Positions 20,495 to 64,000 of a stretch of 64,000 bases of DNA are shown here, in pieces (positions within the stretch are counted from its first letter, which is position 1; every line of letters begins with the position of its first letter). This stretch comes from Basidiobolus meristosporus CBS 931.73. Taxonomy: Eukaryota; Fungi; Basidiobolomycota. The DNA is taken from contig MCFE01000214.1 in NCBI GenBank assembly GCA_002104905.1, positions 1 through 64,000 of the forward strand, read 5' to 3'. A program made the translations under genes and the position numbers. The notes below the pieces were generated by a model, which ran no database searches, was not told the DNA's origin, and saw only the letters and a list, made by a program, of their open reading frames with translations.

Positions 20495-20660
20495 CAAGCA
20501 TCCAATATCTCCCAAATACTCCGCTGTTGTAGACGAATGAATAATTTTACCCACTCAAAATAAACAGATGGGCGAGAGCACGTGACCTTTTATTGAACCA
20601 TCTATCAAGAAAAATATACAAAAATTGACCAGAAAGTAGCGAGCGAGGGCAGCCAGCGTT

Positions 20661-41832: not shown

Positions 41833-44800
41833 TTAATTGCCACTTCTGCTAATCATGGTGACATCCCTCTTGAGGGTGGGAAGAGTCTTAACCTGGCTCT
41901 TCTGGTCTTCACTTAGCTCCGGCAATTCCAAGAAGCCAACCTTGATCAAATACGCCAGATACAATCCCATCAGGGTATCCATCGAGGCGCATTTGACCGA
42001 GGTGTTGGCAATCGACCAGTTAGTGTTGGTGTCATCAAGTTCTGGCGACTTACTGGATGTGGGAAGGTCATCAAGAACAAAGTGCAACAAAGGATATAGG
42101 GCGTTGTCCGAGTTAGCTGACAAAGTAACATCCATGAGGTGATTACGCCAGAGAATGTATTCGACTGGCTTGACATCAAAGCCATACTGCATCAATGAAG
42201 CAAACATGTCATTGAATCGGAATCTGTGAGGATTGGTGGTGTGATAGGCCACACGTTGGAGACACTTCTCCTGTGTAGCCACAGCCACCACAGTTCCAGC
42301 AACATAGTCGACCGGGCACATGTTGACGATGTTGTTCATGATTGGGACTTCCCCAAGCTGTATGCATCCCTTCACCAAACGCCAAAGGAAATCATCGGTA
42401 TTGGTAACGCCGATTTCGGAATCTCCCACAACATACCCGGGTCTGATGATAGTGGCCGGAAGGCCTCGTTTTCTTGCTTCCATGATCAACTTCTCTGAAA
42501 CCCACTTGGATTGACCGTAGCCAGTTTGGAGTCCAGTGCGACTTCCTTCCAGGTCATCATTCTCAGAAACAGGGGTGCCGGTGGTAGAGAGTTGAATGTA
42601 GTGGTCGGAGTCTAAGACGGATGTGGATGAGACAAAATGCAACGACTTGGTCTTGTGTTCAGATGCCAGGCGGAGAGCCTCGAGAGTTCCAATGACGTTG
42701 GCCGCGCGAAGCTTTTGATAAGGATACACCCAATGGACCAAGGCTCCATTATGGATAATGATGTCGACGACCTGGGTCAATTCGGCCCATTTCTCCTGGC
42801 CAATTCCGAGGTTCTCCATGTTCAGATCCCCCTTAACTGCCAGCACATTCTCGTTTCCTGCTTGTCCCCAGCTCTCCTTCCAGACCAGGTGGGCTTCGCA
42901 GTTCTTCTTGATTCTCTCAAAGCCCGACTCTTCGTCCTTGCAACGAACAAGGCAGTGCACTTTGGAGTTTGGGAGTACCCGAAGAATTTCTGCCAAGATA
43001 AACGCACCAAGGAACCCGGTGGCTCCCGTAAGGAAGAAGTGAGTAGTCTTATTTTCTTGAACAGGGAATTGTTCGAGCGGAGCATAGGAGGGGAGAAGCT
43101 TCACGAGCTCATCAAAGTCGTGACTATAGTTCACAGTTTGGGCGTCCTCATTTCCTGAAGGCTGGTCGGGGGTGGCATCGGAATTATCGGGCAAGTTGAG
43201 GTCTTCATTTTTGATCGCTTCTACTTCCTTGCTCATACCACGAATGGTGGGCTCTCTGAACACGAGACCGAGAGGAACATCAACGCCGCATTTCTTACGC
43301 ACATCGAAGATCATGCGAGTGGCCAGGATGGAGTGTCCGCCAATATCGAAGAAGTTGTCGTCGATAGAGATAGAAGCCTGGTTGAGGATGGATCTCCAGA
43401 TATCATGGATAAGCTTCTGAGTGGGAGTAAGCTCAAGTGCAGAGTTTCCGGTCTGGGTTACCGGAGCAGTCTGTGCAGTATCAGGGAATGGTAGAGCAGG
43501 CTTGTCCACCTTTCCGTTGGGTGTCAGAGGCATCTTCTTGAGTGGAACAAAAACTGGAAAATCTTAGTACAAATACTCATTTCTGGGCCATATTTACCCA
43601 AGTTACTTACCAGATGGTACACTGTAGCTGGGGAGCTTCTTCTTCAGCCACTCTCGGATATCTCTGATCAAACGAGTGTACTTTCTGGGTTGTCCAGAGG
43701 AGACGGTCTCCTCATCTGTGCTGAATCCTTCAGCATTCTCCATTGGAACGAAGTAAGAAACCAGAGTCTGCTCTTCGTTCTTGTCACGGCGAACCAAGGT
43801 AACATTTTCGCGAACCAGTGGGTGCTGAGACAGGTGAGTGTCAATCTCACCCAGCTCGATTCTGAAGCCACGGATCTTAATTTGGTCGTCGGCGCGTCCT
43901 GTACACTCGACTATTTTGGCAAAACCTATGAGTGAACAATCTACTTGAAGCATCATTGAAGAAGTCTACTAACCGCATCCATCAGGTTTGTAGCGACCCA
44001 AGTCACCGGTTCTATACATTCTATCACGTGGTCCCTTGAAAAATGGTAGATCGCTGTTGCCATTGTGAAGTGATGGAGACCCGAACCAATTTGTCAAGAA
44101 CTTCTCATTGGTCACCTCCTCCAGCTTCAAGTAACCTTCAGATAAGCCACCACTTCTCACGTAGATTTCACCTACTTCGCCTACGCCACAGAGGCCCTTT
44201 CCTAGTCGGTTCACCACCAAAAGTTGTACGGATCTCATACCGCGACCAGCTGGCATGATATCTTTGGTTGAGGTGAGGAATGACGGATGGGTTGCTCTGG
44301 GTGGGATCGCAAAATACGAAACAGCGCGCTGCGTTTCAGTAGTTCCATACATGTTGATGATTGTGGCATTTGGGGCCAAATGTTGGAGGCGATTGCAATC
44401 TCTCTTGGTCAGAATATCGCCAACGAAGAAAGAGTTGCGAAGGGAGGGAATGGGCGTGGTGGCATTTGCCGAGAGAAGCTGACCCATAGCAGGTGTCAAG
44501 TGGGTTACGGAGATCTCGTGTTCAGCCATCCATTCAGCCAATCTTCCAGGAATCCCAATATCCTCGGAAGTGGGGATATGCAATTCAGCACCTAGGAAGA
44601 GAGGTGTGAAGATATCTCGCTGAATAGGGTCGTGCGCGATACCGGATAGCATTGTGAAGTGATCCTCGTTTGACAAAGAAAACTCTTGCGACATCCATGG
44701 ATAAAAGTGGGTTAGGGAGAAGTGGCGGCCTCTCACGCCCTTTGGAATTCCGGTACTGCCGCTGGTGAATGATAGAGTACCAATACTATCTGGGCCAAGA

Positions 44801-46223
44801 ACTATATCAAGAGAGGTTGAGGCGCAGCCTCTAACTGGCTCCAAAATATCGTCAGCGTCCTCGTCGGAGCCGCCACTTAGGTGGCCATCATCAAAGAGTT
44901 CTAGTGCAGGAATTTCACACTTGATGGATAATTCAGAATCGATGTACTCTCGGACAGTGGGGTGTAAGCTTCCGGCATGCTTGAGAACAACCAGAGCCCT
45001 CGGCTGGGCAACAGAAAGATAGATTTGCTGGCGCGCAGGAGGGTAGGCAGGGTCAATCACACTGAAGGTTCCCCCCGCCATAAGTGTACCAATAATGGCG
45101 ACCACCAAATCAACACCACGGTAGGCATATATCATAACAACATCCTCCCGCTCCAGTCCATTCTGAACAAGATAGTGCGCTACGGTATTGGCGGCTTTGT
45201 AGATATGCTCATAGGTAAAGCGGCGAACTCTTGTAGTCTGGGTAAGGCTGGTGCTAGAGCTTGATTCCAATAGGCTCTCAACGATACAAGTACGCTCAGG
45301 GAAGCTATTGGCATTCCTAGTAAAGATATCGGTAATGGCTCCCTGCCATTGGCACCAATTGAGATCGGCAGTCGGATCAGGAATCACGCTCCTGCAACGC
45401 TCGGAAATGAGATCCATGGTTCCCACTTGAACGCTCTTGTTTGCTGCAGCTGATTCTAACACTAAAACCAGTTGATCAAGGATATGCTGGATACGGGAGG
45501 GCGAGAAGAGGACCTGGTTATATGAGACCTTAACTTCGATTCCGGGAATGAGGCGGCGTAAAGAAGTGGATGAGGAGGTAATGAAGATGGTCAGATCGTT
45601 TGTAGAGGTGGTTTCGGTAATAGTGTTAGTGTCTGTGTCAGTCTGGTTGAAAAAGCGGACTTTGAACAATGGATTTGAAGAATTCTCTTGTTCCTGATAT
45701 AACTGGCTTAGTAAGGCGCCGAATGGGACCTCAATTTTGGCTGCCTGCTCTTCAACCTGGAGCAGTATAAGTTAGATTGATTGTACATCATGGTTGCTTA
45801 CATGTATTGCCATACCTTCTGAACCATCTGAACCACTTCCTCAAAGGTATCGGTGCCCTTGACCGTCAAGCGCAGAACCAGCGGGTTACGGGAGTCGGAG
45901 GAGCTTCCCACTGGGATATCCTCTTCGCCGGTGTATCTGTGCAATAATACTGCAAAAGCAGCAAGCAGTATACTAAATGGAGAAGGGTGCTCAAGTTGAG
46001 CGTTTTCAGTGTTAACCTTGATAGCCAAAGAGAGCTGTAGGATAGCTAAGCAGGTGGCTTCAGAGAGCTGCAACGCCTCAACTGCCTCCACTATCTTGAG
46101 AGGCACCGAGCGTGGGTAATCCGTGGGGAGCTGAAGCTCAGTTAAGCTTTGAAGTCTCTCTTTCCAAGCATTGATTCTGTCAGCCATAGGTATGCTATCG
46201 TGCTGAGGTACGTCGACAGTCAT
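41833..46223 (-). CDS. LYS2: L-2-aminoadipate reductase (ADA-A-T-R), 4 exons
   Basis: [21 protein letters not shown]; [20 protein letters not shown]; [12 protein letters not shown]; [16 protein letters not shown]; reductase [16 protein letters not shown]. The HDPIQRD motif is characteristic of Lys2. Confidence 0.97.
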
Positions 46224-46533
46224 ATTAAGTCTATTTTATGACAGCTGATTAATAATATGAGAGGAAATATCACAAGGAAGTTGAAAAGAGGGCAAGTCTA
46301 TCAGATTACAATTGCTTGCAAACGCACGAAATATGGACCAACAGTATGTGTGTACCGAGAAAGCCGTGGCAATCTATTTATAATGATAAAATGGCTTAGG
46401 TGCAAGTGCGACTGGCATTAGATTGCCAACAGCCATTTTCGGACGAGATAGATGGGATCAACGGTGAATCAATATGATTCAATTGAAATATTCCATCCCA
46501 AGATATGTGTGATGACTGTTTGGGGGCATAGAG

Positions 46534-46540
46534 TGAGTCA
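46534..46540. promoter_or_regulatory. Perfect Gcn4/CpcA-type element TGAGTCA, ~310 bp upstream of LYS2
   Basis: gagTGAGTCAgtc; a second half-site ATGACTC lies at 46813-46819. Confidence 0.55.
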
Positions 46541-48017
46541 GTCTGACGAACAATACTAAAACTTGGACTCAACACCCTCAAATAAACCGCCAGTCCAACA
46601 CCCCCTCAGACAAAGCTCAAGCAAAGCATGCTGTGTTGATAGAAAACACTCGGCTGCATTCCGCCCTAACCCCACAGTCACTCTAATGCATCAGCGTTAG
46701 TGAGGCATCCGTTCTAATCGCCACATCCATATTCAGGCTGGTGGCAATACTTTTCATCCATGTGACGCTCATAAACGGATATTTTGGGATGGATTAGTGA
46801 TGATGACTATGGATGACTCCGGACCACCCCATCCATGATCCACCCCAAGACTAGATTGACGCTGGATGAGTAACGTAACAACATAACACATAGGAAATGT
46901 TGCGCTGTTGTGTTTCAACTGGCACTTTCGTGGAACATGCAGCCAACTCTAAAGAAAATTGGCGTGATCCATTGGAATTGATTAAAAATAGCTAATTTCA
47001 CCGCGATCAGTAATTTAACGCAACCCCCACAAACAGCAATTTTTGGCTCAGAAAAATGGTAAGTACGTGAGCAGCGCCAAGGCCTGAATAATCACTAAAC
47101 AATTATAGGACTTGGTGGATTCTCTTTTGGAGCTACCAGCTCTAGATCCCAGTAAGAGTCCAAGAGTAGCTGATTTGTGCAATAATATAGCCCAACATGA
47201 TACGCTGCGAACGAGGCCTCCCCTCGACATAGATAAGTAGCAGTGATCATTCGTCGGTTCAGTTCAGTTCACTTGGGCATCTGCGCAGACAGGCTCTTAA
47301 TGGCCAACCCCCGTGTCGTCAACCTTCAGATTAGTCAAAGGCGTTCCAAACTTGTCATTCCTGCATCGATAAGAACTAGACTTGGGCAATTAAGTCATAC
47401 CTGTGGATATCTTGGGTAGCATGTACCTTAGAAGGCCCCTTGTTGCGGTTTGCGTAGTAGCCCTGCCACCAGCTTAGCAGCTGCTCGACAAGGAATACAA
47501 TGATCGAGGTTCGTGGAACCTGACCATGAACACGAACGCATAAAGGAACGAATCAAGTCATTTTGGTTACTTAAGACATCGACAGCCTTAACAAGGATGT
47601 CACCCTCGTGGTAGGTTGGGATTTTGTGCCAGCAAAATAAACTCTGAGCATTCCATTTCCGGAGGAGCTCCTATATTTAGCCTTATCTCCCACACTATAT
47701 GCCGGTTTATAACCACCCATTACCAATCACCAGCCCGTATTAGATTGAGAGTTGACTCTGAATCTAAAACCTCGAACTAGATTGAATATATACCTGACCG
47801 TCACAATGCCCCGAGTAGGCCATCGAATTTTTTGTCGAAATTTTATTTGATCGCTGTTAACTCCACCTATTTATTCATTCTTCTAGCCACTTGTTGAACT
47901 GTTAGTTCAATTTTGACATTTAGCACTTTTGACGTTTGCCTATTTCTAGTTGTATATATCTCTGTCTTTGACAACCTCCTACCTTCCTATAATCAACTCA
48001 GCGGAGTTAGAAACACC

Positions 48018-50530
48018 ATGAAATCCACTGACTTTCCTGACCCCTCCAAACTCCCCAAGAGAAAAAGGTTGACGCAAGCCTGCGATACTTGTAGAAAAAA
48101 GAAAGTGAAATGCGATGGAAACCGCCCGAGCTGTTCTAATTGCATTCGACTCAAAGTCCCTTGTACTTACTTGCCAACGGCCAAAAAGCGTGGCCCGCGA
48201 CAGGGGCAAACCGAGAAAGCTGAACATTCAACGAATACTGGAAGCCCCGGTTTCATGAACCAAGCTCAAATGTCCAGCCCTCTACAGCCCTTCGGACTCA
48301 GACCGGCCACCTCCCTTGGCAATTTACCCAGATACATGGACAACGTGAGCGCCAGCCCTGATCCTACCCGAAATATGTATCTCTCGCAATCTCCACAAGT
48401 CAACATACCACAATACCAGGGATCTAGAGAAAATTTTTCGCCAGCTTACAGTTACCAAAACAGCCAACTGAACACTCCAAACATGAACTTCTCGCCAAAT
48501 AATGGGCTGCAAGAAGAGGAGAACGCCGTGCGGGAAAAGGTGGAGCAGGTGTGGTCGCATTCGTATTTGGGGAACACCTCCGGCCTCAACGCAATTACGA
48601 GCAACGGCCAGAAAGAGGCCACCCCGTCCCCGAAGCAATTCTCGAATGCCAACAATCTGCTGGGTGCCACTTCTCTCCCGCCCACCGAGATTACCGAGCA
48701 TTTGCTGTCGGTGTATTTCAGTACCATCCACCCCCAAATGCCGTTTATTCACAAGCCTACCTTCTTCAACCGACTCAAAAACGGAGAGATTCCACCCATC
48801 TTGATCTTGAGCATATGTGCGTGTGTGTCGCGGTTCTCCAACCACCCGGGTATTTTGGCTGACCCCACTACCAGAAGCGGCGAGGTGTTCTCAAATCGCT
48901 TCAGGAATATCTTACTGAAATGTCTGGACGGGCCGAACGTCTATACAACAATGGCCTTGTTGATTGCCTCGTACTACGAATACATGAACGCACGCTATCC
49001 TAGGGCATGGATGTATCTGGGGATGGCCATTAGGTAATTGGGAATTTTCGTCGCCTGTATATTCATTGATTAACAAAATGACGCCACTGTAGAATGGCAC
49101 AAGAGCTGGGAATCAACCGTATCGATGAGCACAACGATAACAGCCGAATCTCTGAACAGGCTCCGGACGACTGGGTTGAGATCGAAACGCAGCGCCGCCT
49201 TTGGTGGTCGTGCTTTGTTCGAGATAGGATCGGGAGCACCGGAACAGGGCGACCAATGGCTATCGACGAGCAGGACAGCCGAGTTCTGCTGCCAAGCTGT
49301 GATTCGGATTGGGAAAATGAAAGGCCCGTCCCTAGCACGATGCTGGAAACATCCAGTCAGACGAAAACCGTGTATTCGCTTACCGCGTCCGCCCCAAAGC
49401 AGCAGCTAAGCCCCTGGTCAATATTCATTCAGCTGGCTGCGCTGATGGGCAAGGTTTCCCAATTCGTGAACAGCCCCAAAGACCGACGCGGAGACTCCAT
49501 CGAGAATGATACGAAATTTGCCTTTCTGGATACTGCGCTGACCTCATGGTCGATGTCTGCTCCCGAAAACCTGCAATACCCAAGAAACCTAATCTCAGAG
49601 AAATCCCCCAAGGGATATGCTGAGGCGGCATTCCTCTGTACACTGCATATCATGTATCACACATCCGTAATATTACTCCACCGTTCAAACCTTGACCAGG
49701 TCGAGAACCAACCCATCTATTCTACCTCCACCAGCTCCGCCTCCGAATCGCTCGATAGGTGTATCGCTTCCGCCGATACCATCACCAAAATCATCGAAGA
49801 TCTCGACAAATACCCCGCATGCTACAATTATCCGCATATCTGCTTTTGCATCTTCAACGGTGGGACCATCCATGCACACACGCTCTTCTCCAGCTCGGAG
49901 GCAGACAAGATTGCCGAAGCGAAGTCAAAGCTTGAAATCCACTACCAAGCATTACAACGACTGAAATCGGTCTGGATCATGGCTGAGAAATATTGTGCTA
50001 TTCTCAAGGGGATTGTGGCACTCGGGCAGCGCCCAGCTTCCGTCTCACCCAACACAAACTCCCTTGTTCAAGAGCTTAGCCAGAACGCAGCCCAGGTTGG
50101 GTTCAACTTTGAACAGCCTATTTACCATTTCTCAGGCAGTCTTGCTTCCAACGGCGTGCATGGCCAGGAGTTCGGGGGAGTCTCTAGCGCGGGTTACCCG
50201 ATCTCCTCTAATTATATCTCGAGCGGTTTACAAATGATTCCCGACTTCAATAGTCCCAGCATACGTATAGCAGACAGCTCGATAGACAGCTCTGCAGGCT
50301 TTCCGAATCTGTTGGACCTTCCAATTGCTCAAGGGAACGCATTCTTTGACACCTTATTTGGCAATATGCCAGTTGACTCCCTCAATCCAGATCCAAACTG
50401 TAATCTATTTAGCAATCTCTACAACCAGCCAGCATCCCAACCAGGAAACACCATGCTCAATGGGCTCAATAATCTTCAAGACAACAACGGCGTTCAAAAT
50501 GTTTGGAGCATCAAGAGCCCGTCCACCTAA
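48018..50530 (+). CDS. Zn(II)2Cys6 transcription factor with fungal-specific TF (middle homology) domain, 2 exons
   Basis: ACDTCRKKKVKCDGNRPSCSNCIRLKVPCTY; YFSTIHPQMPFIHKPTF; WMYLGMAIR|MAQELGI (intron 49034-49091); RRLWWSCFVRDR. Confidence 0.94.
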
Positions 50531-50807
50531 GCGCCAAGACATCTTTACAACCATTGAAATGTAAATAGTTTTTAATAAATGCCATGTTTATCTGCTCATT
50601 GCTGTTGGCTGTCACGATCTCCGGAGAATAGGGTTATCAGTCAGTTGCCGTCGGCCCTAATATTCCGTGTTCCGAGTGCCAAATTAATAATAGGAAATCC
50701 CAGGTGGCGTACGACTGGATGAGGTCACCACCTATGAAATTTCATATGATCATTTATTATTTATATTACCTGGAGGGATCCTCTTTTGTTTCCACAATCG
50801 TTTCACC

Positions 50808-52224
50808 ATGGTCAAGCCAAAGCAAGACCAAGCCTTCGAACATAGGACCACCGACGTGTTGCCGGAGGACAATGAAACGAAATCCGAGAAATGGAGTTTC
50901 ACTTCGTGGATACCCAAATTCCCCAACCTCCCCAGCTACACTGGGTCTTTTACCGTAGGGTGCTGTGACCTCACCTGGTCGTACCTCAAAGAGAAACAGG
51001 TCTTCGAGGGCGCCCAAGAAGTCAACCATACTTCTCCCAAAGAAAACAAGCACATGCTCGTCAGACTGTACTATCCTGCGGTAGTGACCGGTGCCGAAAA
51101 AACTGCAGCCTGGCTGCCTTCCCCCAACTCGGCATATGCACAAGGTAAATCTCTTTTCGGTCGCCCAGGTGACGTTTCTTTTACTGAACGCCTTGTGCCA
51201 TTTGCACTTAGGTTATGGTGACTTCAAAAAGCTTCCCCGCTGGCTGTCGATTCCAGCAATGGTTGGAATGCTGTCTTTTACTTCAGTCAAAACCTTCGTA
51301 GAGGCTAAACTATCCCCGGTCGGGCCTTTCACTAACTCCGATGAGGGTGATCGCTCGAGTCAGCGGGATCGATTCCCGGTTGTAATATTTTCCCACGGAT
51401 TGGGTGGTTGTAGAACCACATATTCGTCCATTTGTGGTGAGATCGCGTCGCATGGATATGTTGTTTGCGCTGTAGAGCATCGAGATGGTACCGCTAACGC
51501 ATCCGCTCTGCCGAAGGGTGAAAAAGAGTTAATATCATACCGCTGGCCACCTGTAGATATCGATGCCGAGTACGTGTTCCGACGGGAGCAGCTCCTCTTC
51601 CGGGTGACGGAGATTCAGCAAATCATTCAGAGACTTGAGCGGCTCAACCGTGGTCTGGGGGTTGATGACAACAACCCGCCAACCGACATGGAGGCCCAAT
51701 TCCAAAATCGCTTGGATCTCTCCAACGTAGTAATGGCTGGGCATAGCTTTGGCGCCGCCACTGCAATAGAAACCCTACGGGTGGAGAAGTCGTTCTTCAA
51801 GTGTGGAGTCCTTTTAGATCCTTGGGTATTCGCTTTGGAGCATACTACAGACAACTGGAGGGGCCCCCTGGTACCCACCCTCGATCAACCAGTCCTTGTC
51901 ATCAATTCTGAAGGATTCACTGAATGGAAAGAGAGCTTTGATATTCTACTACCATTTCTCAACGCAAACCCTCAACGTGACCACTCTCCGTTTATCACCA
52001 TCAAAGACTCACTCCACATGAATCAGAGTGATTTCCCTTTATTGTTTCAATACGTGTACGGCCTGAAAAACAAATTCGGTGGGAAGATAGATCCGGAATA
52101 TGCCATCGCACTAAACAACCGTGCGATCCTGCAGTTCATGAGGGAATCCATCCCACTCTTCAGTCGTTTTTTAGCCGATGATGATAGGATCTTCTCTTCT
52201 GAGCCACATGTACTCTTTCATTAA
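50808..52224 (+). CDS. Platelet-activating-factor acetylhydrolase-like alpha/beta hydrolase, 2 exons
   Basis: FPVVIFSHGLGGCRTTYS; ASHGYVVCAVEHRDG; nucleophile GHSFG; LDPW; HMNQSD; intron 51145-51211. Confidence 0.9.
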
Positions 52225-52334
52225 TACCTAGACCGGCTCTTTTTATTTCAACCATGCGCATTCCGGATCTAATCTGCACATCAATCCTTTCCCTCGGTAT
52301 TCAAAGACCAAAGTTGCTTAAACAAGAAGAGCAT

Positions 52335-53477
52335 TTACCGAGTTGGCTCCAGTTCAAATCCCCAGTCTTCATGCACATGGATTAGATCAGTGACCTTCCA
52401 GGAACCACGTCTCCACATCTCTTCATCCTCTGGATACGCTTCAGCCAGCTTTTTCATCGCTCGTACACTCTTGATTGCATGCCCATGGATATCCTCATCA
52501 TCGATGGCCGCTTGGGAGATCTTCTCCCAGGCTTTTGCTTTGTCGCTAGATAAGTTATTGATGGGATATTCAGTGACATATTCCCATTTGGGCTTCAACT
52601 TTCTGGCGAAAATAAAGATTCTTAGAGTGGTTAGCCACATCAAACGTAACGCACGAACTTGATCGTTCTTGGATAAATAAGGGAGAATCACCCGAGTGCC
52701 ATGAAGCCCGGTCATTAGATGACATATGTAGAAGTTGGGAGGTTGCTCAACTGGGTGACCCAGAAAGAGCAGCGTGATTGCTCGGGCAAGTTCATGGATC
52801 TTGTGCTCCAGGTTTTCCTGGGGATCCCAAGCAGTGAAGTATTCCTGGATATACCTCACATGTTCAGCATCCATCGACCTCTCAAATACTCCATCAATAT
52901 CAAGTCCTTCAAGGTCATTGAAACGTGGGTCAACTCTCATCTCATCCAGAATACTGATGATATCCTTGGAGGTATGTCCAGGATGCACCTTGTCAACCAG
53001 TTCTCCAGCTGCATCATATGCCAAGGTAGCAAACGCTAGAGCCTCTCCAAGAATCAAATCATTCCTGAACTCCGTAGCATACCCCAGGTGAATCAATGGA
53101 TGGATTACTTGTGCAGCGAGACCAGGAATTAGACTTGGTGCATATTTCTGGAATGCAGTATCGAAGCCCAGTTTGGCAACCTCGCCATCGAAGAAATCGG
53201 TCAAATCGCGATATGCGTCATTCTTACCGGTGTATTGGCGGTAGTTGCTCTCGTTGATCTGGTACTTTGACTCTCCCAATTTGCGCAGATGTTGGGTTGC
53301 CCCTTTCTGGAGTTGTTCCCGCATACGCTCTCCAGTGGCTCCCAAGTCATACAGGCTTCCAAGAAGATGCACACTATGGTTGTGGTAGTAATCGTTGAAG
53401 AAAAGGTCGTATTCCCGATGGTTTTGGCCGATCAGTTCCTCAAAGGCTTTCTTGTTATTGCTAGTGGTAGCGGACAT
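52335..53477 (-). CDS. Questin-oxidase-like protein (DUF4243/PF14027), copy A, 380 aa
   Basis: YHNHSVHLLGSLYDLGA; HPLIHLGYATEF...GEALA; FYICHLMTGLHG; HGHAIKSVRA. Start MSATT chosen by alignment with copies B and C. Intronless. Confidence 0.82.
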   Translation of the reverse strand: MSATTSNNKKAFEELIGQNHREYDLFFNDYYHNHSVHLLGSLYDLGATGERMREQLQKGATQHLRKLGESKYQINESNYRQYTGKNDAYRDLTDFFDGEVAKLGFDTAFQKYAPSLIPGLAAQVIHPLIHLGYATEFRNDLILGEALAFATLAYDAAGELVDKVHPGHTSKDIISILDEMRVDPRFNDLEGLDIDGVFERSMDAEHVRYIQEYFTAWDPQENLEHKIHELARAITLLFLGHPVEQPPNFYICHLMTGLHGTRVILPYLSKNDQVRALRLMWLTTLRIFIFARKLKPKWEYVTEYPINNLSSDKAKAWEKISQAAIDDEDIHGHAIKSVRAMKKLAEAYPEDEEMWRRGSWKVTDLIHVHEDWGFELEPTR

Positions 53478-53564
53478 ATTGTTGTTTGAATGAGAGCCAT
53501 TCCCCCTGGAGCTCTCTATTATATACTTGCTCAGCCATGCCCACTCCATCTTTCATCCCGTTCT

Positions 53565-53596
53565 AAATGAAGCATAAGCAATTAGTAATCCATGCA
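53565..53596. promoter_or_regulatory. Conserved 32-bp upstream block containing TTAGTAA (Yap1/Pap1-type YRE), copy A
   Basis: aaatgaagcataagcaattagtaatccatgca, 29/32 identical to the block upstream of copy B (56172-56203); TATATAA (minus strand) lies between it and the ATG. Confidence 0.6.
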
Positions 53597-54935
53597 ATAC
53601 TGTGTGACGAAGTGGCAGGGTTGCTGGTTGAAAGGACCCAGCCAAGCCACCAATAGTCAGAGCTTTTCCGTAGTGAGACAATCATTGCTCCAGAAATACC
53701 TCGTAAGGCGAATCATTGGCCACCAACCTGTACTAAACAACCTATCAAATCTCAACATAATCCTTGGACCGAGTTTATTTTACATCACTTCGAATTATAG
53801 TGAATTGCCGTTTCAGGCGAGATGTGATCGTTCAGACTATACATTCCATTTAGAGCACCAATACATGATCCGTGGATTAGGAAATCCAATCGTCCAGAAC
53901 ATAAAACCCTTCCCAGAGATGATTGACAGGATGGCATGACTCTCATTCATGATGTTCAGGTGCGACTCAATGGTTGGTAGCGTGGGAGTGACGATCGTAC
54001 TTTTCGACCGCGTATGTTGGTAGAACTAGTTACCACCAGCTCATTCGGGATGCCTTGCAAATGAATCAGCGCTCTGGATTTGGGATCCCTTAAAGTTCCA
54101 TGAACTTTTTCTGCCTCGTTAGTCATCACTTTATCCATTCCTTAGGCAATGGAATTGGTTTCTGTACAATGCCATCATCCAGCGGTTGGGAACTCGACTT
54201 GACCAACGGGAACCCTTACTAGTAAACATACATGATTATCTATCGATTTCAAACACTAACTTGCGGTCGGGGAAACGGCCTACTCTGCGCCCCGAGATTT
54301 GAATTACTAATAGGAAGCAAATTATGGTGTGCAAAGGAGTGACACAGCTCAATATGGTAGTATTTCGCCAACTAGGCTGGAGGATCTACCAGATTCTTGG
54401 CAATTCCAAACCAGTTTGTGCCAACTGGTGTAGCGTTTCTGAGCACAAATGCCGGATGGGAGTATCTAATAAGCATTAGTTTCGTACTCGACTGTCCGAG
54501 TAGAAACGCAATAGGGGTCTGGCTGGTTTGAAATAGAGTACTCGCAGGTTCCAGGTTGGAGTTTGTGAATCATCAGGAGCAGTTGCCATTCTGAGGGTCG
54601 GAGGTTCGGCTCATCATCCACGAACCAATGTACCTCGTCTATAGATTGGTGAATAGAATGGGGTAGGGCCCACATCACCTATAGTTTCCGATTTTGAAGT
54701 GATACACATCCGTGCGTTTCCTTGATCCATAATGATACTCCTCCAGTATGCTTTATCCAACGGTGATGTCAGTCACGTATTCTCATCCACTTGCTTTTAG
54801 AAACATTTACATTTATTCAGATCGACAAATAAACCAAATAGCATAAAGATGTGCCATCTCCTTTGAAACAAGTCGTGCGACAATCACTTACCTCAGTTAA
54901 CTATGGCCGAGGCCACTAAGGATCCCAAGATATAT

Positions 54936-56078
54936 TTACTCAGTTGGTGCCAATTTGTAACTCCAGTCTTGATGAACATGAACTTGATTGGTGACCCTCC
55001 AAGAGCCCCGTCTCCAGATTTCCTCATCCTCTGGATAGGTTTCAGCTAGCTTTTTCATGGCTCGAACACTCTTGATCGTATGGCCATGGACATCATCATC
55101 ATTGATGGCCGCTCGGGATATCTCCTCCCATGCCTCTGCCTTGTCTTGGGGCAGGCTGTCGATGGGATACCCCGTGATATGCTCCCATTTGGGCTTGAAG
55201 TGTCTGACGAGAATAAAGTATCGCAGAGTGGTTAGCCACATCAAACGCAATGCACGAATCTGGTCATTCTTGCATAGGTGGGGGAGAAGAACCCGAGTGC
55301 CATGAAGCCCAGTCATTAGATGGCATATGAAGAAGTTGAGATGCTCCTCAGGCGGGTAGCCCAGGAAGAGCAAGGTGATCGCCCTTGCGAGTTCATGGGT
55401 CTTTTTCTCCGTGTCTTCCTGAGGATCCCAGGCGGTGAAGTATTCCTGGATATGCTCCATATGTTTGGCATCCATTGACCCCTTAAACACCCCATATACG
55501 CCAAGATCTTCAAGGTCGTTGAAGCGAGGGTCAGCTCTAACCTCATCTAGAATACTGGCGATATCCTTGGAGGTAGGTCCAGGGTGAACCTTGTCAATCA
55601 GTTCTCCAGCCGAGTCATAGGCCAAGGTGGCTAGTGCTAAGGCCTCCCCGAGGATCAGATCATTCCTGAACTCCGCAGCATACCCCAGGTGAATCAAAGG
55701 ATGAATCACATGAGAACCAAGACCGGGGATTAGGGCTGGCACATACTTCTGGAAAGCAGCATCGAATCCCAGTTTGGCAATCTCACCATCAAAGAAGTCG
55801 GCCAAATCACGATATGCCACACCCTTGCCGACATATTGTTGGTAGTTATCCTCGTTGATCTGGTATTCGGATTCGGGTCGCTTCAGCAGATGTGATTTGA
55901 CCCCCTTCTGGAATCTCTCACGCATACGCTCCTCACTGGCTCCCAGATCATACAGACTCCCAAGAAGGTGTGCGCTATGGTTGTGGTAGTGCCCGTTGAA
56001 GAAGATGTCATATTTCTGATGATTTTGGCCAATCAGATCCTCGAAGGCTTTCTTGCTAGTACTAGAAGTGACGGGCAT
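54936..56078 (-). CDS. Questin-oxidase-like protein (DUF4243), copy B, 380 aa
   Basis: Same His motifs as copy A; intact and intronless. Confidence 0.85.
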   Translation of the reverse strand: MPVTSSTSKKAFEDLIGQNHQKYDIFFNGHYHNHSAHLLGSLYDLGASEERMRERFQKGVKSHLLKRPESEYQINEDNYQQYVGKGVAYRDLADFFDGEIAKLGFDAAFQKYVPALIPGLGSHVIHPLIHLGYAAEFRNDLILGEALALATLAYDSAGELIDKVHPGPTSKDIASILDEVRADPRFNDLEDLGVYGVFKGSMDAKHMEHIQEYFTAWDPQEDTEKKTHELARAITLLFLGYPPEEHLNFFICHLMTGLHGTRVLLPHLCKNDQIRALRLMWLTTLRYFILVRHFKPKWEHITGYPIDSLPQDKAEAWEEISRAAINDDDVHGHTIKSVRAMKKLAETYPEDEEIWRRGSWRVTNQVHVHQDWSYKLAPTE

Positions 56079-56325
56079 GTTGTTGTGTGATTATGGGAAT
56101 CCCTTCACTTGACGCCCTCTGTTATATACTCATACAACCTTGCCAACTTCCTTTATGTTTCGTCGTATGCCAAATGAAGCATTTGCAATTAGTAATCCAA
56201 GCATGAATGAGAGCGCGTGGTTGATCAATGTCGCATAACTAACACCAGGATCCAAATTGCCCAAACCCACTCAGTAGTGATGTAACAAAGTCAAATTAAG
56301 GCTGAATGAGTCTGCCAGCTGCGGT
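55003..56325. repeat. 1,323-bp near-identical segment, copy 1 (partner 58774-60096)
   Basis: Constant offset of 3771 bp; only 5 amino-acid differences over ~360 codons; upstream ~245 bp almost identical. Confidence 0.92.
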
Positions 56326-57420
56326 GGATTGGTAAGATATATTGCCCACCAACCTTACAAAGGCAATTCATTGTTTATGGTGTGAGGAGATTGTAATAAA
56401 CTGAGCACAGGGAGGTCGGCATTGGAGATGGATTAGAGCAGTATTTCTCAAGTGTTCAAACATTGGCTAATTGCTAGCCACCTAATTGCCTATTAATACA
56501 ATCCAGATGCTCACTAATAACTCCTTGCCTTGACAGCTCTACCTCTCGTAGTACAGTCAACCTATAGTACCCTCCAGGATGCCTGAATCTGAGATCCTCC
56601 ATGCGCAATAAGAAATCTCCTTAATACTTTATATGGTGCTAAAATGGACGATCTATTTCTACCCTTTGCAGTTCTCAGATTGGGATGGTATTGGCAATGC
56701 TTAAATCTCGATTAAGCAGTAGGCCAATCGGCCATTTTCATCCTCGGCGTTAGAGCTCCTTGCACCGAGGTTTGTATTACTAATCCATCAATTCATGAGG
56801 TGCGGAGTGGTATGAGGTCACTTGGCGTATTCAGCATTCATTAGCTTTGGCAAGTCACAAATTTAGGTTCCTGAGAATTTCGCGTCATTTGGTGTCACCC
56901 ATCTTAAATGAACAAGAGCTACTCATTCTGAACCTATTTCTGGAAAGGTTGAAAACCCACTCGTGTCACCCTGGAAAGTGTTTGCATGGTTATGCGTAGA
57001 TGTCAAACGATACAATTCCATGGTGAAATCGCAACTCCTGGGCTGACCACCGAGTAAGTGAGAGTGCCCACAAACCAAGACGCCATATCGCATGCCCTCG
57101 GTTCTGCATCGGTGGTGAAATATGCAAAAGTCCATTTCACTGTTTTGGCCTTTGCTGCCATGTGGTGAGGTTGTCTGGATCAAGTCACAGGCTCTCATCC
57201 ACTGGTGTTTCGTCTTGTTTTAGAGACGTCACTGTTCATTCAGCTCTGCAAATGACAGCTTTGAGAATTTACTCCCAGGCTGCTGCCCCGTCTTTGGTAG
57301 GTTATTAATGAGGTGTTCAGCGATATGTTCCCATCTGCGCCTCAACTGTTCGATGAAATCAAAGACTGCGAATGATTAATCACCTCAAATACCATGTACA
57401 AGCTATATCATCCTAGGAAA

Positions 57421-57887
57421 AGTGCAGGAAAATAGGCCCAGTGCCATGAAGCCCAGTCATTATATGCACTAGGAAGAATGTGAGAGGCGGCTTAGACGGA
57501 TGACCCGAAAGAGCAAGATGATCATCCGTGGGAGTTCATGAACCTTGAAGGCCGTTGAAACATGGGCCAATCTTAGCGATGATGTCCTTGAGTTTATAGT
57601 ACATGTTTCTGGAAAGCAGCATTGATGCCCAATTTGGCAACCTCACCATCAAAGAAATCGGTCAAAATGCGATGTGGTACCCTATCAGTACATAGCTGAT
57701 AATTATTCTCATTGAACTGATATTTGGATTCAAATAGTCTATACGAATCTTCTTTGGCTCTCACGCTTACATCCTTCAGCAGCCCTCGGTTCTATGTGGT
57801 TCCGAAAAATACATGTGGTACTTCCGAGAATTACTCTTTGGCGATAACGCTACTAGATTCCTCTAAAGCCTTCTTGCTACTATACAT
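57421..57887 (-). pseudogene. Internally deleted DUF4243 pseudogene (psi1)
   Basis: Blocks matching copies A/B in colinear order (gtgccatgaagcccagtcatta; ctggaaagcagcatt...caccatcaaagaaatcggtcaaa; aaagccttcttgcta...cat) but compressed to ~470 bp with no open frame. Confidence 0.85.
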
Positions 57888-58709
57888 AATGGTGGTGATA
57901 TCGTTGTTTAGATATACGTGCTTTCACCCGATACTTATTAACAGGCCACTTTGAAGCCAGGTTCAACAGCCATTCAGTTCCCAGAAACAGTTCTAACCAA
58001 TTTAGTTAGGATGACAAGCTACCGACCGTTCTGTCATTTGTCTTCAGAAGTAAAGCGCTACACTGTAAGTGGTAGATCAATGAAATCCATGAGTGGTCGT
58101 CATTTATATCATATCACTTGATATCGCGTACACTGCTAGTTTAGATTACCAAAACAAGCTTAAGTCGGCTAACCAATAAACACTCGACTTTTAGTTAACG
58201 CCTAGTAGAAATATCCTTAGAATTGGGCATTTGCCGATGGTGCGAAGTTCTGATTAATCATGGTGGCTACCATCTTGTTAATCCTTTCAGGATTCCTAAG
58301 AATCTGGAAAATATGAAGACAATAACTGGCACCTTTGAAGGAATATTTATTAATGGTGATTTGTATCCGGTAAAAGCGGTACTATTTACAGGTAATGCTT
58401 TCCATCGTGTAGAACGTATGGAAAAGTTACACAAGCAGTATATAGCCCCTAGGGCAATTTTTAGAGCATCACAGACCAGAAGAGTCCTCAAAACAAGTAT
58501 AGACGATTTCTAGCTTGCAGACTTCAATGGATCACTGGGTATTTGAAACACCAGCTGAGGAGCCGATTATTCACAGTACTCAACATTAACCTTAACCAAT
58601 AGCCTTCCTCTGCAACACCACGTGAGCATCCAGAGATCCGTAGCAAATGCTTTATTTGAAATACCCGCTTGTTGGATGTGAGTGACACAATGGTGCTTTT
58701 CTCCATTCT

Positions 58710-59849
58710 TCAATTATCGAGACCTTGGAATCCCCAATCATCATGAACATGGACAAGGTTGGCAACCTTCCAGGAGCCCCGTCTCCAGATTTCCTCATCC
58801 TCTGGATAGGTTTCAGCTAGCTTTTTCATGGCTCGAACACTCTTGATCGTATGGCCATGGACATCATCATCATTGATGGCCGCTCGGGATATCTCCTCCC
58901 ATGCCTCTGCCTTGTCTTGGGGCAGGCTGTCGATGGGATACCCCGTGATTTGCTCCCATTTGGGCTTGAAGTGTCTGACGAGAATAAAGTATCGCAGAGT
59001 GGTTAGCCACATCAAACGCAATGCACGAATCTGGTCATTCTTGGATAGGTGGGGGAGAAGAACCCGAGTGCCATGAAGCCCAGTCATTAGATGGCATATG
59101 AAGAAGTTGAGATGCTCCTCAAATGGGTAGCCCAGGAAGAGCAAGGTGATCGCCCTTGCAAGTTCATGGGTCTTTTTCTCCGTGTCTTCCTGAGGATCCC
59201 AGGCGGTGAAGTATTCCTGGATATGCTCCATATGTTTGGCATCCATTGACCCCTTAAACACCCCATATACGCCAAGATCTTCAAGGTCGTTGAAGCGAGG
59301 GTCAGCTCTAACCTCATCTAGAATACTGGCGATATCCTTGGAGGTAGGTCCAGGGTGAACCTTGTCAATCAGTTCTCCAGCCGAGTCATAGGCCAAGGTG
59401 GCTAGTGCTAAGGCCTCCCCGAGGATCAGATCATTCCTGAACTCCGCAGCATACCCCAGGTGAATCAAAGGATGAATCACATGAGAACCAAGACCGGGGA
59501 TTAGGGCTGGCACATACTTCTGGAAAGCAGCATCGAATCCCAGTTTGGCAATCTCACCATCAAAGAAGTCGGCCAAATCACGATATGCCACACCCTTGGC
59601 GACATATTGCTGGTAGTTATCCTCGTTGATCTGGTATTCGGATTCGGGTAGCTTCAGCAGATGTGATTTGACCCCCTTCTGGAATCTCTCACGCATACGC
59701 TCCTCACTGGCTCCCAGATCATACAGACTCCCGAGAAGGTGTGCGCTATGGTTGTGGTAGTGCCCGTTGAAGAAGATGTCATATTTCTGATGATTTTGGC
59801 CAATCAGATCCTCGAAGGCTTTCTTGCTAGTACTAGAAGTGACGGGCAT
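58710..59849 (-). CDS. Questin-oxidase-like protein (DUF4243), copy C, 379 aa
   Basis: Intact; near-identical to copy B except for the last ~20 residues. Confidence 0.85.
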   Translation of the reverse strand: MPVTSSTSKKAFEDLIGQNHQKYDIFFNGHYHNHSAHLLGSLYDLGASEERMRERFQKGVKSHLLKLPESEYQINEDNYQQYVAKGVAYRDLADFFDGEIAKLGFDAAFQKYVPALIPGLGSHVIHPLIHLGYAAEFRNDLILGEALALATLAYDSAGELIDKVHPGPTSKDIASILDEVRADPRFNDLEDLGVYGVFKGSMDAKHMEHIQEYFTAWDPQEDTEKKTHELARAITLLFLGYPFEEHLNFFICHLMTGLHGTRVLLPHLSKNDQIRALRLMWLTTLRYFILVRHFKPKWEQITGYPIDSLPQDKAEAWEEISRAAINDDDVHGHTIKSVRAMKKLAETYPEDEEIWRRGSWKVANLVHVHDDWGFQGLDN

Positions 59850-60096
59850 GTTGTTGTGTGATTATGGGAATCCCTTCACTTGACGCCCTCTGTTATATAC
59901 TCATACAACCTTGCCAACTTCCTTTATGTTTCGTCGTATGCCAAATGAAGTATTTGCAATTAGTAATCCAAGCATGAATGAGAGCGCGTGGTTGATCAAT
60001 GTCGCATAACTAACACCAGGATCCAAATTGCCCAAACCCACTCAGTAATGATGTAACAAAGTCAAATTAAGGCTGAATGAGTCTGCCAGCTGCGGT
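58774..60096. repeat. 1,323-bp near-identical segment, copy 2 (partner 55003-56325)
   Basis: See partner. Confidence 0.92.
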
Positions 60097-60600
60097 AGTT
60101 CGGTATGACACATTGTCCACCAACATTACATAGGCTTGAGGAGCATAAATTCAGAGGTTGTATCAGATATGGATCAAAACAGCACTCCTCAAGTGTCCAA
60201 ACATTGGTTAATTGTTGGCCACTTAATTACCTGTTAGTACAATAGATATTCACCAATGGCTCCTAAACATTCAATACTCCCCAGGAATACCAAATCTGAA
60301 GGTATTGTGACACTACTGGAATGTAGTAGACAATCTATTTTTGCTCTGGGAAAAAAGCCTGTTAAGCTAGCAAGCCTGAACCATCCATGCTACCTTAACA
60401 ATAAAGAGCCACTGTACTTTGTCTGCATTAATCATGAAATATACATTATGTTGACGTCTTGTGGGGAGATTATTTGGATCAAGCCACATGCTCGCATCTG
60501 CTAGTATTTTGAGTTACTTCCTGAATAATAGGTGGTGGTTGGAAAGCAAGTAATCTACTTTGAAACAAATTGTTTAACAGCCACCCACCTTAAGAGGGGC

Positions 60601-61290
60601 AGTTACTAGGCTGGGGTCCCCATGAGCATGGACTAAACTGGTGAACCTCCAAGAGCCACGTCTCCAGGTTTCTCCATCCTCTGGATAGGTCTCAGCCTGC
60701 TTTTTAATGCTTGTCAATGCATGATTGTATGACTGCGAACGCCATCGTCATTGATGACAACCATGTGGAATTACTCCTGGGCTTTAGCTTTGCCCTCCCA
60801 CTAGTTGCCAATGAGGTGGCCAGTAAAATTTTCCCATTTGGGCATCAACTCTTACAATGAATATAATGACCAAATAAATGTTCTAAAATCAATCTGTTCT
60901 TCAGCAGCCAAACCAGTCCAAAAACTAATTGCATAATAGCTACAGATGCATCAAATACATACAGGGGATCCATTTCCAAAGGAATTTTCCCACAATGGTA
61001 ATGCACAGCACCTATTGCTTCCAATGTATCCTGTGTAGGATTTTCTTTGGAGTCCCACTTTAATATATACATTTGCAGTACATTCAGCACATATGCTTGC
61101 ACCTTGAAATAAGTATAAAGGTACTGATTCAAATTTGCTGGAAATATTTTGGGCCATATAAGCTCTGAAATATATTGCTAGTTCTTCACATTTATCTGGT
61201 CACTCATAGAGCTCATAAGCATAAGATGCCACCTGTGCACTCTGTCTTTAGTATTGGCATATTGTTGGAAGGTAAATGGGTTGCTTACAA
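60601..61290 (-). pseudogene. Degenerate, more divergent DUF4243 pseudogene (psi2); upstream limit uncertain
   Basis: 60601-60850 matches the 3' end of copies A-C (ctccaagagccacgtctccag, catcctctggatagg, tcccatttgggc); LQMYILKWDSKENPTQDTLEAIGAV aligns with IQEYFTAWDPQEDTEKKTHELARAI; stops and frameshifts present. Confidence 0.7.
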
Positions 61291-61935
61291 TGAAAAGTAC
61301 TTGCTACTACATATTCCCACTATCTTCAATAACTCTACTTTACATTTAGATCCCTATTGTGCTGCAATGCAAAGCACCCTATTCCTATGGAGTGGGAGAA
61401 AGTATTACACAAATTTAGCAAAATCAACTCAAGGAAATTCTACTGCCAGCCAAAAGGAATGAAGCAACTGATTGCAAGCCTGATTGGAGTATACAACCAA
61501 GCATTAGTTGGCCAGTATACAGCTAAGTGTTGTCTGGAAATAAGGAAACTCTAGATCTGTTGTAAATGACAAACCCTTACCTTGACCAAAAGTGAGTTAA
61601 TTTTGCCCAAATAGGAGCCATGGGATAGCCCAGAGACTATATAGCACTATTACCATCTGATATAATGACTCTGCATATAATTTCAGCCTGTGCAAGGGAT
61701 TAAAGATGATGATTAGTATGTTGATCAGATTGTTCTGATGTTTAGGCATACAATTAAGTAGATAAGCACATTGTATTACAAATAATTTCTTCAGTTATGT
61801 TAAACACCAATGCATATACTGTTGAATAGTATATTAGTTCAGTATGCAATACATTTAAATCTTTTTATACACTTATTACAGATTGCACACTCTCAGTATG
61901 TATCTATTACATATGAGTATTTTGTCAAGTGGGAG

Positions 61936-62284
61936 TGTGGTAATTATAAAGTTGTCATGTAAATGTTCATGCTAACTTAGTGACATAGATCATATTCTTT
62001 GATTAGCATTCTGTCCTGACCAAATGTCTTGTCACAATTTACTTGGAATACTTTCACCATATTATCAGGTACCCAGATTATGGTCTTGCTCAGAGTTGTC
62101 CAAAAGCCCCCAATCTTTGCACACATATTCTTAGGACCTTCCTGAGCATATTTTACACACTTGTTTACTCTACTTTATCAAAAGTATAAATCCCATACTT
62201 TTGATCAGTAAATCAACAAGTGGATAACATTTAAGTCCTCTTGTTCTCCATATCTCTTCCAATACTCCTCCAAATATTGCAACA
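61936..62284 (+). repeat. Solo LTR related to the Copia LTRs, opposite orientation (~349 bp)
   Basis: Reverse complement reads tgttgcaatatttggaggagtattggaag...ggaaggtcctaagaatatgtgtgcaaag...ttaccaca; no matching TSD (GGGAG/GATAT). Confidence 0.82.
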
Positions 62285-63227
62285 GATATATACCATATCC
62301 CTAGCCACAACATTACATTGTTAACCAGTAGATGGATCACTAGGCAGTCCTGGGTCCATGGAGTATCCTGGCATTCTTTTCTATGGGTGTAGTCTCATTG
62401 CATATTGGGATCTTGCCAGGCTCATGCAGGTTCCTGTTGCAAGGGGAGATAGTCACAAAATCAATCAGCAAGCCTTCTGCTTCAGTGCAATCACCAAGTG
62501 GGCCATATTCAGAAGGCTGAGGTGAGCTAACAGGCATCACAAGCTCATATCAGTCAGTTTGTGATAGATGACAAGTATGGTTAGGTGCTGTTATAGAAGT
62601 ACCAGGTGGCCAGCAAGATATTACTGATACAGTAGTGTCTGATGGATGCTTAAATTTGACTGGTGTGGCAAGTCAGTGGCAGTGATCCTTGTAACACTTC
62701 CAATACTGATGTGTGCTTCACAGCTGAAAGGCTGATTAGAGCAGCAACATGGTTGTTTGCCACTTCTCTTGAGGTGTTGAATCAAAGTAGTCCTTTCTGT
62801 AGGGCAAACAGCTTGACACTCATTAGTATAATGCTATCATATCCCTACTTTTCAAACTAAAATGATTATAAGACAATCTTTTATTTAAGACATTGCACCT
62901 ATGTCAATATAAGATTCAATGATGACCCACCATTGTAAGCACTATGAACAAAGTTGTGGCATCACATACATCAAGATAAGTGGCACTACTTCCCCATTGT
63001 CTTAAAATACATCCATATATATATATGCTGCCAAAAAACAAAGCCAAGTTGTCTGGTTCCCAACCAAACACCACTGCTGACAGCAGCAGAATAATGGATG
63101 GACAACATCTTGCTTTGACATTCAATGAAACAAGCAGGGCTACATCCAAAAAAAGCCATGTTGACTGTGAGACCACTGAAGGTAATAATGTAGACTCCTC
63201 AGGCTCCCAGTCAGGTAGGCAATTGAG

Positions 63228-63430
63228 TGTTGCAATATTCTGAGGAGTATTGGAAGTGATGTGGAGAACTAGAGGATTTACATGTTATTCACTTATAGAT
63301 TTATTGATCAAAAGTATGGTATTTATACTTTTGATAAAGTAGAGGAAAACAAACGTGTAGAGTTTGTTAAGGAAGGTCCCAAGAATATGTGTGCAAAGTT
63401 TGGGGTCTTTTGGACGACTTTGAGAAAAAT
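63228..63430 (-). repeat. Truncated LTR of the same family
   Basis: tgttgcaatattctgaggagtattggaagtgat...ggaaggtcccaagaatatgtgtgcaaagtttgggg...ctttgagaa; homology stops just before the DNA transposon end. Confidence 0.85.
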
Positions 63431-63438
63431 AATAATAT

Positions 63439-64000
63439 AGACTTGTTCCGTTGGATAGTGCCACATAGTGCCAGCCGGTTTATAGTGCCGGATCGATCTG
63501 GCACTCTATGGCACTATCTGGCACTATAATTTCTACCATGATGCCAGTGGTATGATACAGTTACTGGTAATTTTACTCAATCTTACTTATGTTGCTCAGA
63601 ATAGTGCTTTCCTTGCTTTATTTACTCTTCATAATGCTCCAGACACATTTCTCTCAGTGGATGTCTTCTTGTATGAACATACTGTGCATTGATAAGTATC
63701 TTAACTATTTTACCTATTCTGCTGTTTTCTCCTATATATGACTTTCCTCTGTATTTACCTGCCAATATGCTGAATCTCTTCAGATATCCAAATGTGTGCT
63801 CTACCCTTACTCTGAAATGATTAAATATCTCATTGTTGAGCTTCTGCTTCCTGCTAAGCACACCATTCCTTGGCTTCCTATAAGCTGTAATACATCCTAA
63901 TCTCTGACAATCCTCTCCTATATAGGCCAAGTCTGCCATACATTTCTCCCCTCTACTGAATTCAGGATGATTCTCTACCCAGAGTGCTTTGTCATGCCTA
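63439..64000 (-). mobile_element. PIF/Harbinger-ISL2EU-type DNA transposon, downstream end
   Basis: Transposase ORF plus a terminus AGACTTGTTCCGTT (resembles PIF-type TIRs) and inverted subterminal ATAGTGCC repeats; the TIR position is inferred. Confidence 0.7.
63622..64000 (-). CDS. DDE_Tnp_4-type transposase, C-terminal part (5' end outside window)
   Basis: RHDKALW...MADLAYIG...NEIFNHFRVRVEHTFGYLKRFSIL...YR (HD, D and E catalytic-type motifs); frame open to the window edge. Confidence 0.88.
   Translation of the reverse strand, partial: RHDKALWVENHPEFSRGEKCMADLAYIGEDCQRLGCITAYRKPRNGVLSRKQKLNNEIFNHFRVRVEHTFGYLKRFSILAGKYRGKSYIGENSRIGKIVKILINAQYVHTRRHPLREMCLEHYEE

Follow-up and report, generated by a model that had tools for sequence, protein, structure and literature searches.

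In early-branching fungi, 5-methylcytosine (5mC) is described as being confined to transposons (PMC12695648). Phycomyces blakesleeanus, which has DNMT1 and Dim-2, carries CG methylation on its transposons (Lax et al. 2024, PMC11258239), and a passage in PMC7862722 cites Zemach et al. 2010 for CG methylation in this fungus. In Microbotryum and rusts (Pucciniomycotina), repeats are hypermutated strictly at TpCpG (Horns et al. 2012, PMC3318451), and in vertebrates, CpG dinucleotides are depleted by methylation-driven decay (e.g., PMC12582260). Repeat-induced point mutation (RIP), as found in Neurospora, targets CpA and produces an excess of TpA. For the Pucciniomycotina, TpCpG hypermutation of repeats was reportedly also described by Hood et al. 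in 2005. Here, we describe a locus in the zoopagomycete Basidiobolus meristosporus CBS 931.73 from which every CpG has been erased over 2.6 kb. It lies next to an array of questin-oxidase-like genes in a stretch of 64,000 nucleotides (nt) of contig MCFE01000214.1 (positions 1 to 64,000), which was analyzed at full length and is called the window in the following.

CpGs are present at positions 60746 and 63354, and a direct count found none in between, as had been stated for 60748 to 63353 in an earlier inspection of the letters alone (the sequence-only reading). The gap of 2,608 nt is 4.6-fold longer than the next longest CpG-free gap in the window (567 nt). From base composition, 92 CpGs are expected in this CpG-free core (60747 to 63353; GC content, 37.6%), where the sequence-only reading had estimated ~80 at ~36% GC. 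At the local background observed-to-expected ratio (O/E) of 0.6 to 0.72, the expectation is still 55 to 66 CpGs; the CpG O/E of the core is not near the background, as it would be if the sequence-only reading were wrong. The probability of finding no CpG is 1.5e−29 at the window-wide O/E of 0.72, 1e−24 at the O/E of neighboring noncoding DNA (0.60), and ~1e−6 to 1e−8 even at an O/E of 0.15 to 0.20, a range that brackets the value of 0.18 of the other depleted block in the window (1 to 4500). The CpG O/E of the core lies below 0.033 (95% bound), and the rest of the window (5001 to 60000) is essentially undepleted (O/E, ~0.8).

The missing CpGs are matched by TpG and CpA. TpG has an O/E of 1.41 and CpA of 1.49 in the core, in line with the abundance of TG and CA seen by eye; together they reach 1.45, compared to 1.11 ± 0.07 in 2.6-kb background windows (z = 4.7), and the surplus of ~104 dinucleotides has the size of the missing CpG pool. 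GpC, in contrast, is not depleted (O/E, 1.19 to 1.20). A normal GpC content together with a surplus of TG and CA speaks for a dinucleotide-specific decay and not for low GC. The loss is blind to the preceding base: ACG (0 observed/57.5 expected), CCG (0/34.7), GCG (0/34.7), and TCG (0/57.5) are all at zero, as expected from context-blind CpG methylation.

That CpGs were once present and have mutated is seen most directly in a repeat of 333 to 348 bp with the ends TGTTG...CAACA, for which LTR-like (long terminal repeat-like) is a fair name, judged by these ends. The window contains four copies of this repeat R. R1 (3306 to 3638, plus strand) and R2 (3793 to 4140, plus strand) are direct copies within the CpG-poor block at 1 to 4500; R3 (61937 to 62284, minus strand; full length, with the TGTTG start at 62284 and an approximate far end) lies within the core; and R4 (63228 to 63436, plus strand) comprises the first 209 nt of the repeat, is truncated at ~63436, and keeps CpGs at 63354 and 63415. 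In a four-copy alignment in which CpGs were counted column by column, six columns have CG in one copy and TG or CA in all others, and a seventh has only TG and CA. Hence, the family once had at least six CpGs. No copy has kept more than two of them, and the retained sets differ between the copies. R3 has kept none: three of the six columns are TG in R3 and three are CA (a small sample), while non-CpG C>T or G>A changes in the R3 lineage affect 5 of 55 G/C sites. The footprint of C-to-T/G-to-A decay proposed in the sequence-only reading is therefore borne out by a TG/CA surplus of the right size, by untouched GpC, and by the CG-to-TG or CA changes in the LTR copies.

A second component of the core derives from a host gene. 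The array comprises the intact genes A (52353 to 53477), Bc (54936 to 56078), and C (58710 to 59849), all three questin-oxidase-like (PF14027) and on the minus strand, and contains an old oxidase pseudogene, psi1 (57251 to 57740, minus strand). Another questin-oxidase pseudogene, psi2, is robustly recognizable at 60595 to 60887 (minus strand; equivalent to amino acids 286 to 378 of the intact copies but interrupted by stops and a frameshift), and the edge of the core at 60746/60747 falls within it. The 141 nt of robust psi2 inside the core have no CpG, compared to 4 to 6 in the aligned segments of the intact copies; in the 147 nt of psi2 just outside the core, 3 CpGs are present, compared to 3 to 4. 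Changes inside the core run toward AT (19 GC>AT versus 10 AT>GC), and those outside run the other way (8 versus 15). CpG loss thus covers a host pseudogene as well as repeats, as had been claimed, although coverage of most of psi2 is not supported: beyond the 141 nt, only a possible continuation at 60888 to 61177 (minus strand) can be named, which is colinear and has a weak match to amino acids 210 to 247 of copy A. BLASTP of the open reading frame (ORF) at 60848 to 61177 (minus strand) gave an E value of 0.022 against copy A and 9.9 against copy Bc, a marginal extension to ~61080, and a Pfam search of 60888 to 61177 gave no match. At the very boundary of the core (60736 to 60747), psi2 has three private CpGs within 12 nt where the intact copies all have TG, TG, and CA; these may be newly gained, or they may be ancestral sites that were lost in the functional lineage.

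CpG loss tracks position and not repeat status. psi1, which is as old as psi2, lies in mid-array, and serves as a position control, keeps 13 CpGs (O/E, 0.57), the intergenic DNA of the array has an O/E of 0.62 to 0.77 and its genes of 0.54 to 0.63, and a 1.33-kb pair of sequences in Bc and C that is 99% identical has an O/E of 0.54 to 0.55; all of them keep their CpGs. psi2 and its flank are affected by the loss, though psi2 is itself a paralogue of the array.

The Bc/C pair also bears on the left limit of the depleted DNA. Positions 58754 to 60097 of copy C (minus strand; CpG O/E, 0.54 to 0.64) are 99% identical to 54983 to 56325 of copy Bc, with 19 differences over ~1.33 kb, 3 of them at CpG, and identity falls sharply at both edges of this gene conversion tract. 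Upstream of Bc and C, the CpGs occupy the same positions as far as +244 from the gene start, and in the next 650 nt, there are 14 CpGs upstream of Bc versus 6 upstream of C. The onset of CpG scarcity coincides exactly with the right edge of the tract. The simplest explanation is a conversion with Bc as the donor, which overwrote a flank of C that had been poor in CpG before, so that the pattern favours Bc as the donor and C as the recipient, a direction that we infer. The sequence-only reading had named the same donor (as copy B) and had suggested that conversion keeps copy C alive. The conversion itself is borne out by the 99% identity and the sharp edges; the second part is not, since the unconverted 3′ end and the downstream flank of C have a normal CpG content as well.

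From the tract edge to the core, CpG is scarce, as had been noted from ~60100 on: this left shoulder (60098 to 60746) has 6 CpGs (O/E, 0.21) and comprises the 3′ end of psi2 and, upstream of gene C, an old flank that has diverged. To the right of the core, only 6 CpGs are found at 63354 to 64000, 4 of them within 46 nt, and none after 63494. Because CpG is still scarce there, the CpG-poor domain, which begins at ~60100, probably extends past the end of the window. A second CpG-poor block lies at the other end of the window (1 to 6000; O/E, 0.12 to 0.25, and 0.18 for 1 to 4500), and its edge is graded, with the O/E climbing through 0.39, 0.64, and 0.79 to 0.95 over 4 to 8 kb. Among the residual CpGs of block 1 to 4500, TCG is kept least (0.12 of the expectation, compared to 0.18 to 0.30 for ACG, GCG, and CCG), which makes it ~2 to 3 times more depleted than the other NCG contexts.

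How does this locus compare with the described systems? It resembles Phycomyces and other early-branching fungi, with which B. meristosporus shares its early divergence and the listed enzyme set of DNMT1 and Dim-2-like proteins and would also share a mark on repeats and silent DNA that spares genes and the CpG-specific footprint that such a mark is expected to leave. It differs in that only the mutational scar is seen here, whereas the mark itself is known in Phycomyces, in that erasure is total over 2.6 kb and reaches a host-derived pseudogene, and in that the species is a zoopagomycete. With the Pucciniomycotina, it has in common C-to-T mutation at CpG in transposon-like DNA, a fungus without RID, and a loss far above passive deamination. 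Strict TpCpG targeting of that type is rejected, however, since ACG, CCG, and GCG have been erased in the core as fully as TCG, and the intact Bc/C pair and psi1 speak against a dependence on repeats. With Neurospora RIP, which leaks into adjacent single-copy DNA, the locus shares a repeat-rich island whose irreversible C-to-T mutations reach neighboring sequence. Yet the Neurospora criteria of TpA/ApT > 0.89 and (CpA + TpG)/(ApC + GpT) < 1.03 contrast with values of 0.82 and 1.55 in the core, which point in the opposite direction; RIP in Neurospora mutates linked duplicates longer than ~400 bp, whereas the Bc/C duplicates are unmutated; and RID is not listed for the species. Neurospora-type RIP was therefore rejected. 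The likeness to vertebrates lies in a decay of CpG to TpG and CpA that is driven by methylation and starts from transposons, with nearby host DNA affected and unmethylated DNA remaining rich in CpG. Vertebrate genomes equilibrate at a CpG O/E of ~0.2, far above the bound for the core, and the undepleted remainder of the window is a further difference.

Our data point, with moderate firmness, toward a transposon-nucleated, CpG-methylated silent domain that decays by deamination. The CpG-free DNA would be the core of a domain of silent chromatin at the oxidase array's distal edge, made up of LTR relics, a Harbinger insertion, and decayed DNA. CpGs would be methylated domain-wide, in repeats and elsewhere, by a maintenance system of the DNMT1/UHRF1 type, possibly together with Dim2-like enzymes, and deamination of 5mC would convert CpG to TpG or CpA, whatever base precedes. 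Over a long time, a decay that is ongoing or stopped only recently may have removed every CpG and advanced over ~0.6 to 1.8 kb into DNA of host origin, namely, psi2 and the old flank upstream of gene C. In a later conversion, Bc would then have replaced gene C and the 250 bp upstream of it with sequence of normal CpG content, thereby fixing the present left limit of the CpG-poor DNA at ~60100. In this model, 5mC as the cause and the transposons as the nucleating elements are the parts that we infer. A methylated domain finds support in the graded shoulders (O/E of 0.21 at 60098 to 60746 and a rise from 0.12 to 0.95 over 3 to 8 kb at the other block) and in the enzymes reported for B. meristosporus, which are DNMT1 (ORX99839), two Dim2-like proteins (ORX98566 and ORX84408), UHRF1 (ORX90637), and HELLS (Funabiki et al. 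2023, PMC10538959); the listing for the species is without DNMT3, DNMT4 (RID; entered as ND), and DNMT5 (PMC10538959).

Several points weigh against this model. PMC10538959 leaves the 5mC column for B. meristosporus blank, and the levels of 5mC reported for early-diverging fungi are generally very low (PMC8298701). The collection of papers that we searched contained neither a 5mC map for B. meristosporus nor a description of CpG-erased islands in Basidiobolus. The CpG-specific transition bias, whose absence from repeat alignments would have refuted the sequence-only reading, is present in the columns of R. Pairwise spectra (upstream flanks of Bc and C, R1 to R4, Bc/C, A/Bc, and psi2/Bc) have transition/transversion ratios of 0.7 to 2.9 with no clear asymmetry but are too small to inform; the column-wise count of the family is more telling. 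Furthermore, psi2 is more diverged overall inside the core (46%) than outside (29%), and its GC>AT changes include transversions, so that CpG decay alone is insufficient as an explanation. A further point is the strength of the process required. With 444 TpG/CpA sites and no CpG (taking 3 CpGs as the 95% upper limit for zero observed), CpG loss at steady state must be at least ~74 times the rate of regain by T>C. R3 and R4 have each accumulated ~7% T>C or A>G changes per A/T site since their split; at this divergence, ~30 new CpGs are expected in the zone, and none is present. The corresponding estimate for vertebrates is 10- to 15-fold, well below this bound, and passive deamination alone may therefore not suffice. 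Either a CpG-specific process far stronger than the vertebrate estimate has been at work, or the zone was swept recently.

This extreme ratio keeps an enzyme-driven, RIP-like mechanism in play. In its homology-triggered form, a cytosine methyltransferase or deaminase would act on repeats (here, the LTRs and the oxidase paralogue psi2) in a sexual or parasexual stage and leak into neighboring DNA. A strong process of this kind would account for the complete loss, the absent ~30 regained CpGs, and a loss at least ~74 times faster than regain (or else for a recent sweep); it would also suit the preferential depletion of TCG in the other block and the status of psi2 as a repeat of the array. TpCpG hypermutation of repeats has the Pucciniomycotina precedent (PMC3318451), and RIP-like signals have been suggested, with caveats, for Entomophthorales (PMC11105155). 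However, a homology-triggered mutator of the Neurospora kind is expected to hit linked duplicates, and neither the 99%-identical Bc/C pair nor psi1 has been depleted; the classical RIP indices fail, CCG and GCG have been erased along with the other contexts, unlike under the strict targeting in Microbotryum, and DNMT4/RID is not listed for the species (PMC10538959). We therefore consider homology-triggered hypermutation rather doubtful. It is imaginable, as a similarly tentative idea, that active, enzyme-driven CpG hypermutation in a zoopagomycete without RID targets chromatin domains instead of homology and reaches adjacent host genes, with deamination perhaps carried out by Dim2-like or DNMT1-type enzymes and CpG being destroyed at least ~70 times faster than it is re-formed. 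If true, this would be an analogue of RIP outside the Dikarya with a different targeting logic. The sequence-only reading had left the choice between dense CpG methylation and a CpG-directed RIP-like process; it was right in kind, and of the two, we favour domain-wide methylation and regard the RIP-like process as the distinctly less probable one.

Two further explanations place the absence of CpG outside any such process. The zone could derive from mobile elements in which CpG was absent from the outset or disfavored by selection, a view to which the CpG-free transposase part of the adjacent Harbinger element and the ~2 kb of the zone without known origin lend something. The zone is, however, a patchwork of unrelated pieces without an intact ORF, the ancestors of two of its components demonstrably had CpGs (at least six sites for LTR family R and 4 to 6 for psi2), and the TG/CA surplus equals the missing CpG, all of which makes native avoidance of CpG highly improbable. 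Chance, low GC, or an artefact of assembly or contamination has only the lower GC content of 37.6% in its favour. A probability of at most 1e−24 at background O/E and an undepleted GpC led us to reject chance and low GC, and an artefact is hard to reconcile with a zone that is contiguous with the oxidase array through psi2 and has copies of LTR family R in common with the opposite end of the window; this group of explanations can practically be dismissed.

The sequence-only reading regarded such an erasure as notable for an early-diverging fungus, which is overstated, given that transposon-confined 5mC is reported for such fungi (PMC12695648) and shown in Phycomyces (PMC11258239, PMC7862722). 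The kind of process is already known; a loss this complete and this indifferent to context, together with the built-in controls, makes for a good test locus, not a new system. What the locus adds is a sequence-level sign of long-acting cytosine methylation, or of a related CpG-directed mutator, on transposon islands of a zoopagomycete, a lineage discussed almost only for N6-methyladenine. It offers a natural experiment within 9 kb, where an intact pair of genes is found together with one pseudogene of normal CpG content, another from which CpG has been erased, and a conversion tract whose end coincides with the onset of erasure. It is suited to asking whether a secondary-metabolite gene array is reached by silencing that starts in transposons and could reveal whether an extreme loss rate needs more than passive deamination.

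As for the contents of the zone, the LTRs named in the sequence-only reading are supported by their TGTTG...CAACA ends, whereas a non-TE (transposable element) spacer and a decayed reading frame, which it also named, are not, as no ORF piece has a family match. The stretch at 61178 to 61936 (~760 nt) is CpG-free DNA without a match to an in-window repeat or protein family, and the segment between R3 and R4 (62285 to 63227, 943 nt) is likewise CpG-free; altogether, ~2 kb of the core are unassigned DNA. A Pfam search with permissive E values of 20 ORF pieces from the core and the left shoulder (60256 to 63243) gave nothing usable and missed even the clear C-terminal piece of psi2. A stop-free piece of 122 amino acids (62919 to 63284, minus strand), which extends 57 nt into R4, had no relatives in a word search among proteins of 0.55 to 1.75 times its length. 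R3 and R4 are 86% identical and inverted; they were considered as the LTR pair of one retroelement, which was rejected because of this orientation. Part of the core, 60888 to 61959, has a GpC O/E of 1.42, compared to a background of 0.94.

R4 is interrupted by the end of a PIF/Harbinger-type transposon (63437 to 64000, minus strand), which runs off the window and has a CpG-free DDE_Tnp_4 ORF at 63622 to 63939. Its first part (63437 to 63530) contains ATAGTGCCA-type subterminal repeats and a 21-nt inverted repeat (63454 to 63474 and 63498 to 63518). These subterminal repeats hold 4 of the 6 CpGs found at 63354 to 64000, and the transposase part that follows (63495 to 64000) is CpG-free. At the other end of the window, R1 and R2 are 81% identical and enclose an internal segment of 153 bp, an arrangement that resembles a miniature LTR element or one with an internal deletion; we saw no matching target-site duplication.

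The window also holds Zn2Cys6 and Fungal_trans domains, which support its fungal origin, a nonribosomal peptide synthetase (NRPS)-like A-T-R gene, and pentatricopeptide repeat (PPR) genes. The region from 41833 to 61100 is likely a secondary-metabolite cluster, comprising the NRPS-like A-T-R enzyme split over two ORFs (41833 to 43533 and 43969 to 45669), a Zn2Cys6/Fungal_trans regulator split over 47913 to 49037 and 49094 to 50530, and a PAF-AH-type hydrolase (51091 to 52224), followed by the questin-oxidase array. Two large convergent PPR-repeat genes of 947 and 746 amino acids, with many PPR_2 repeats, are located at 15112 to 20554.

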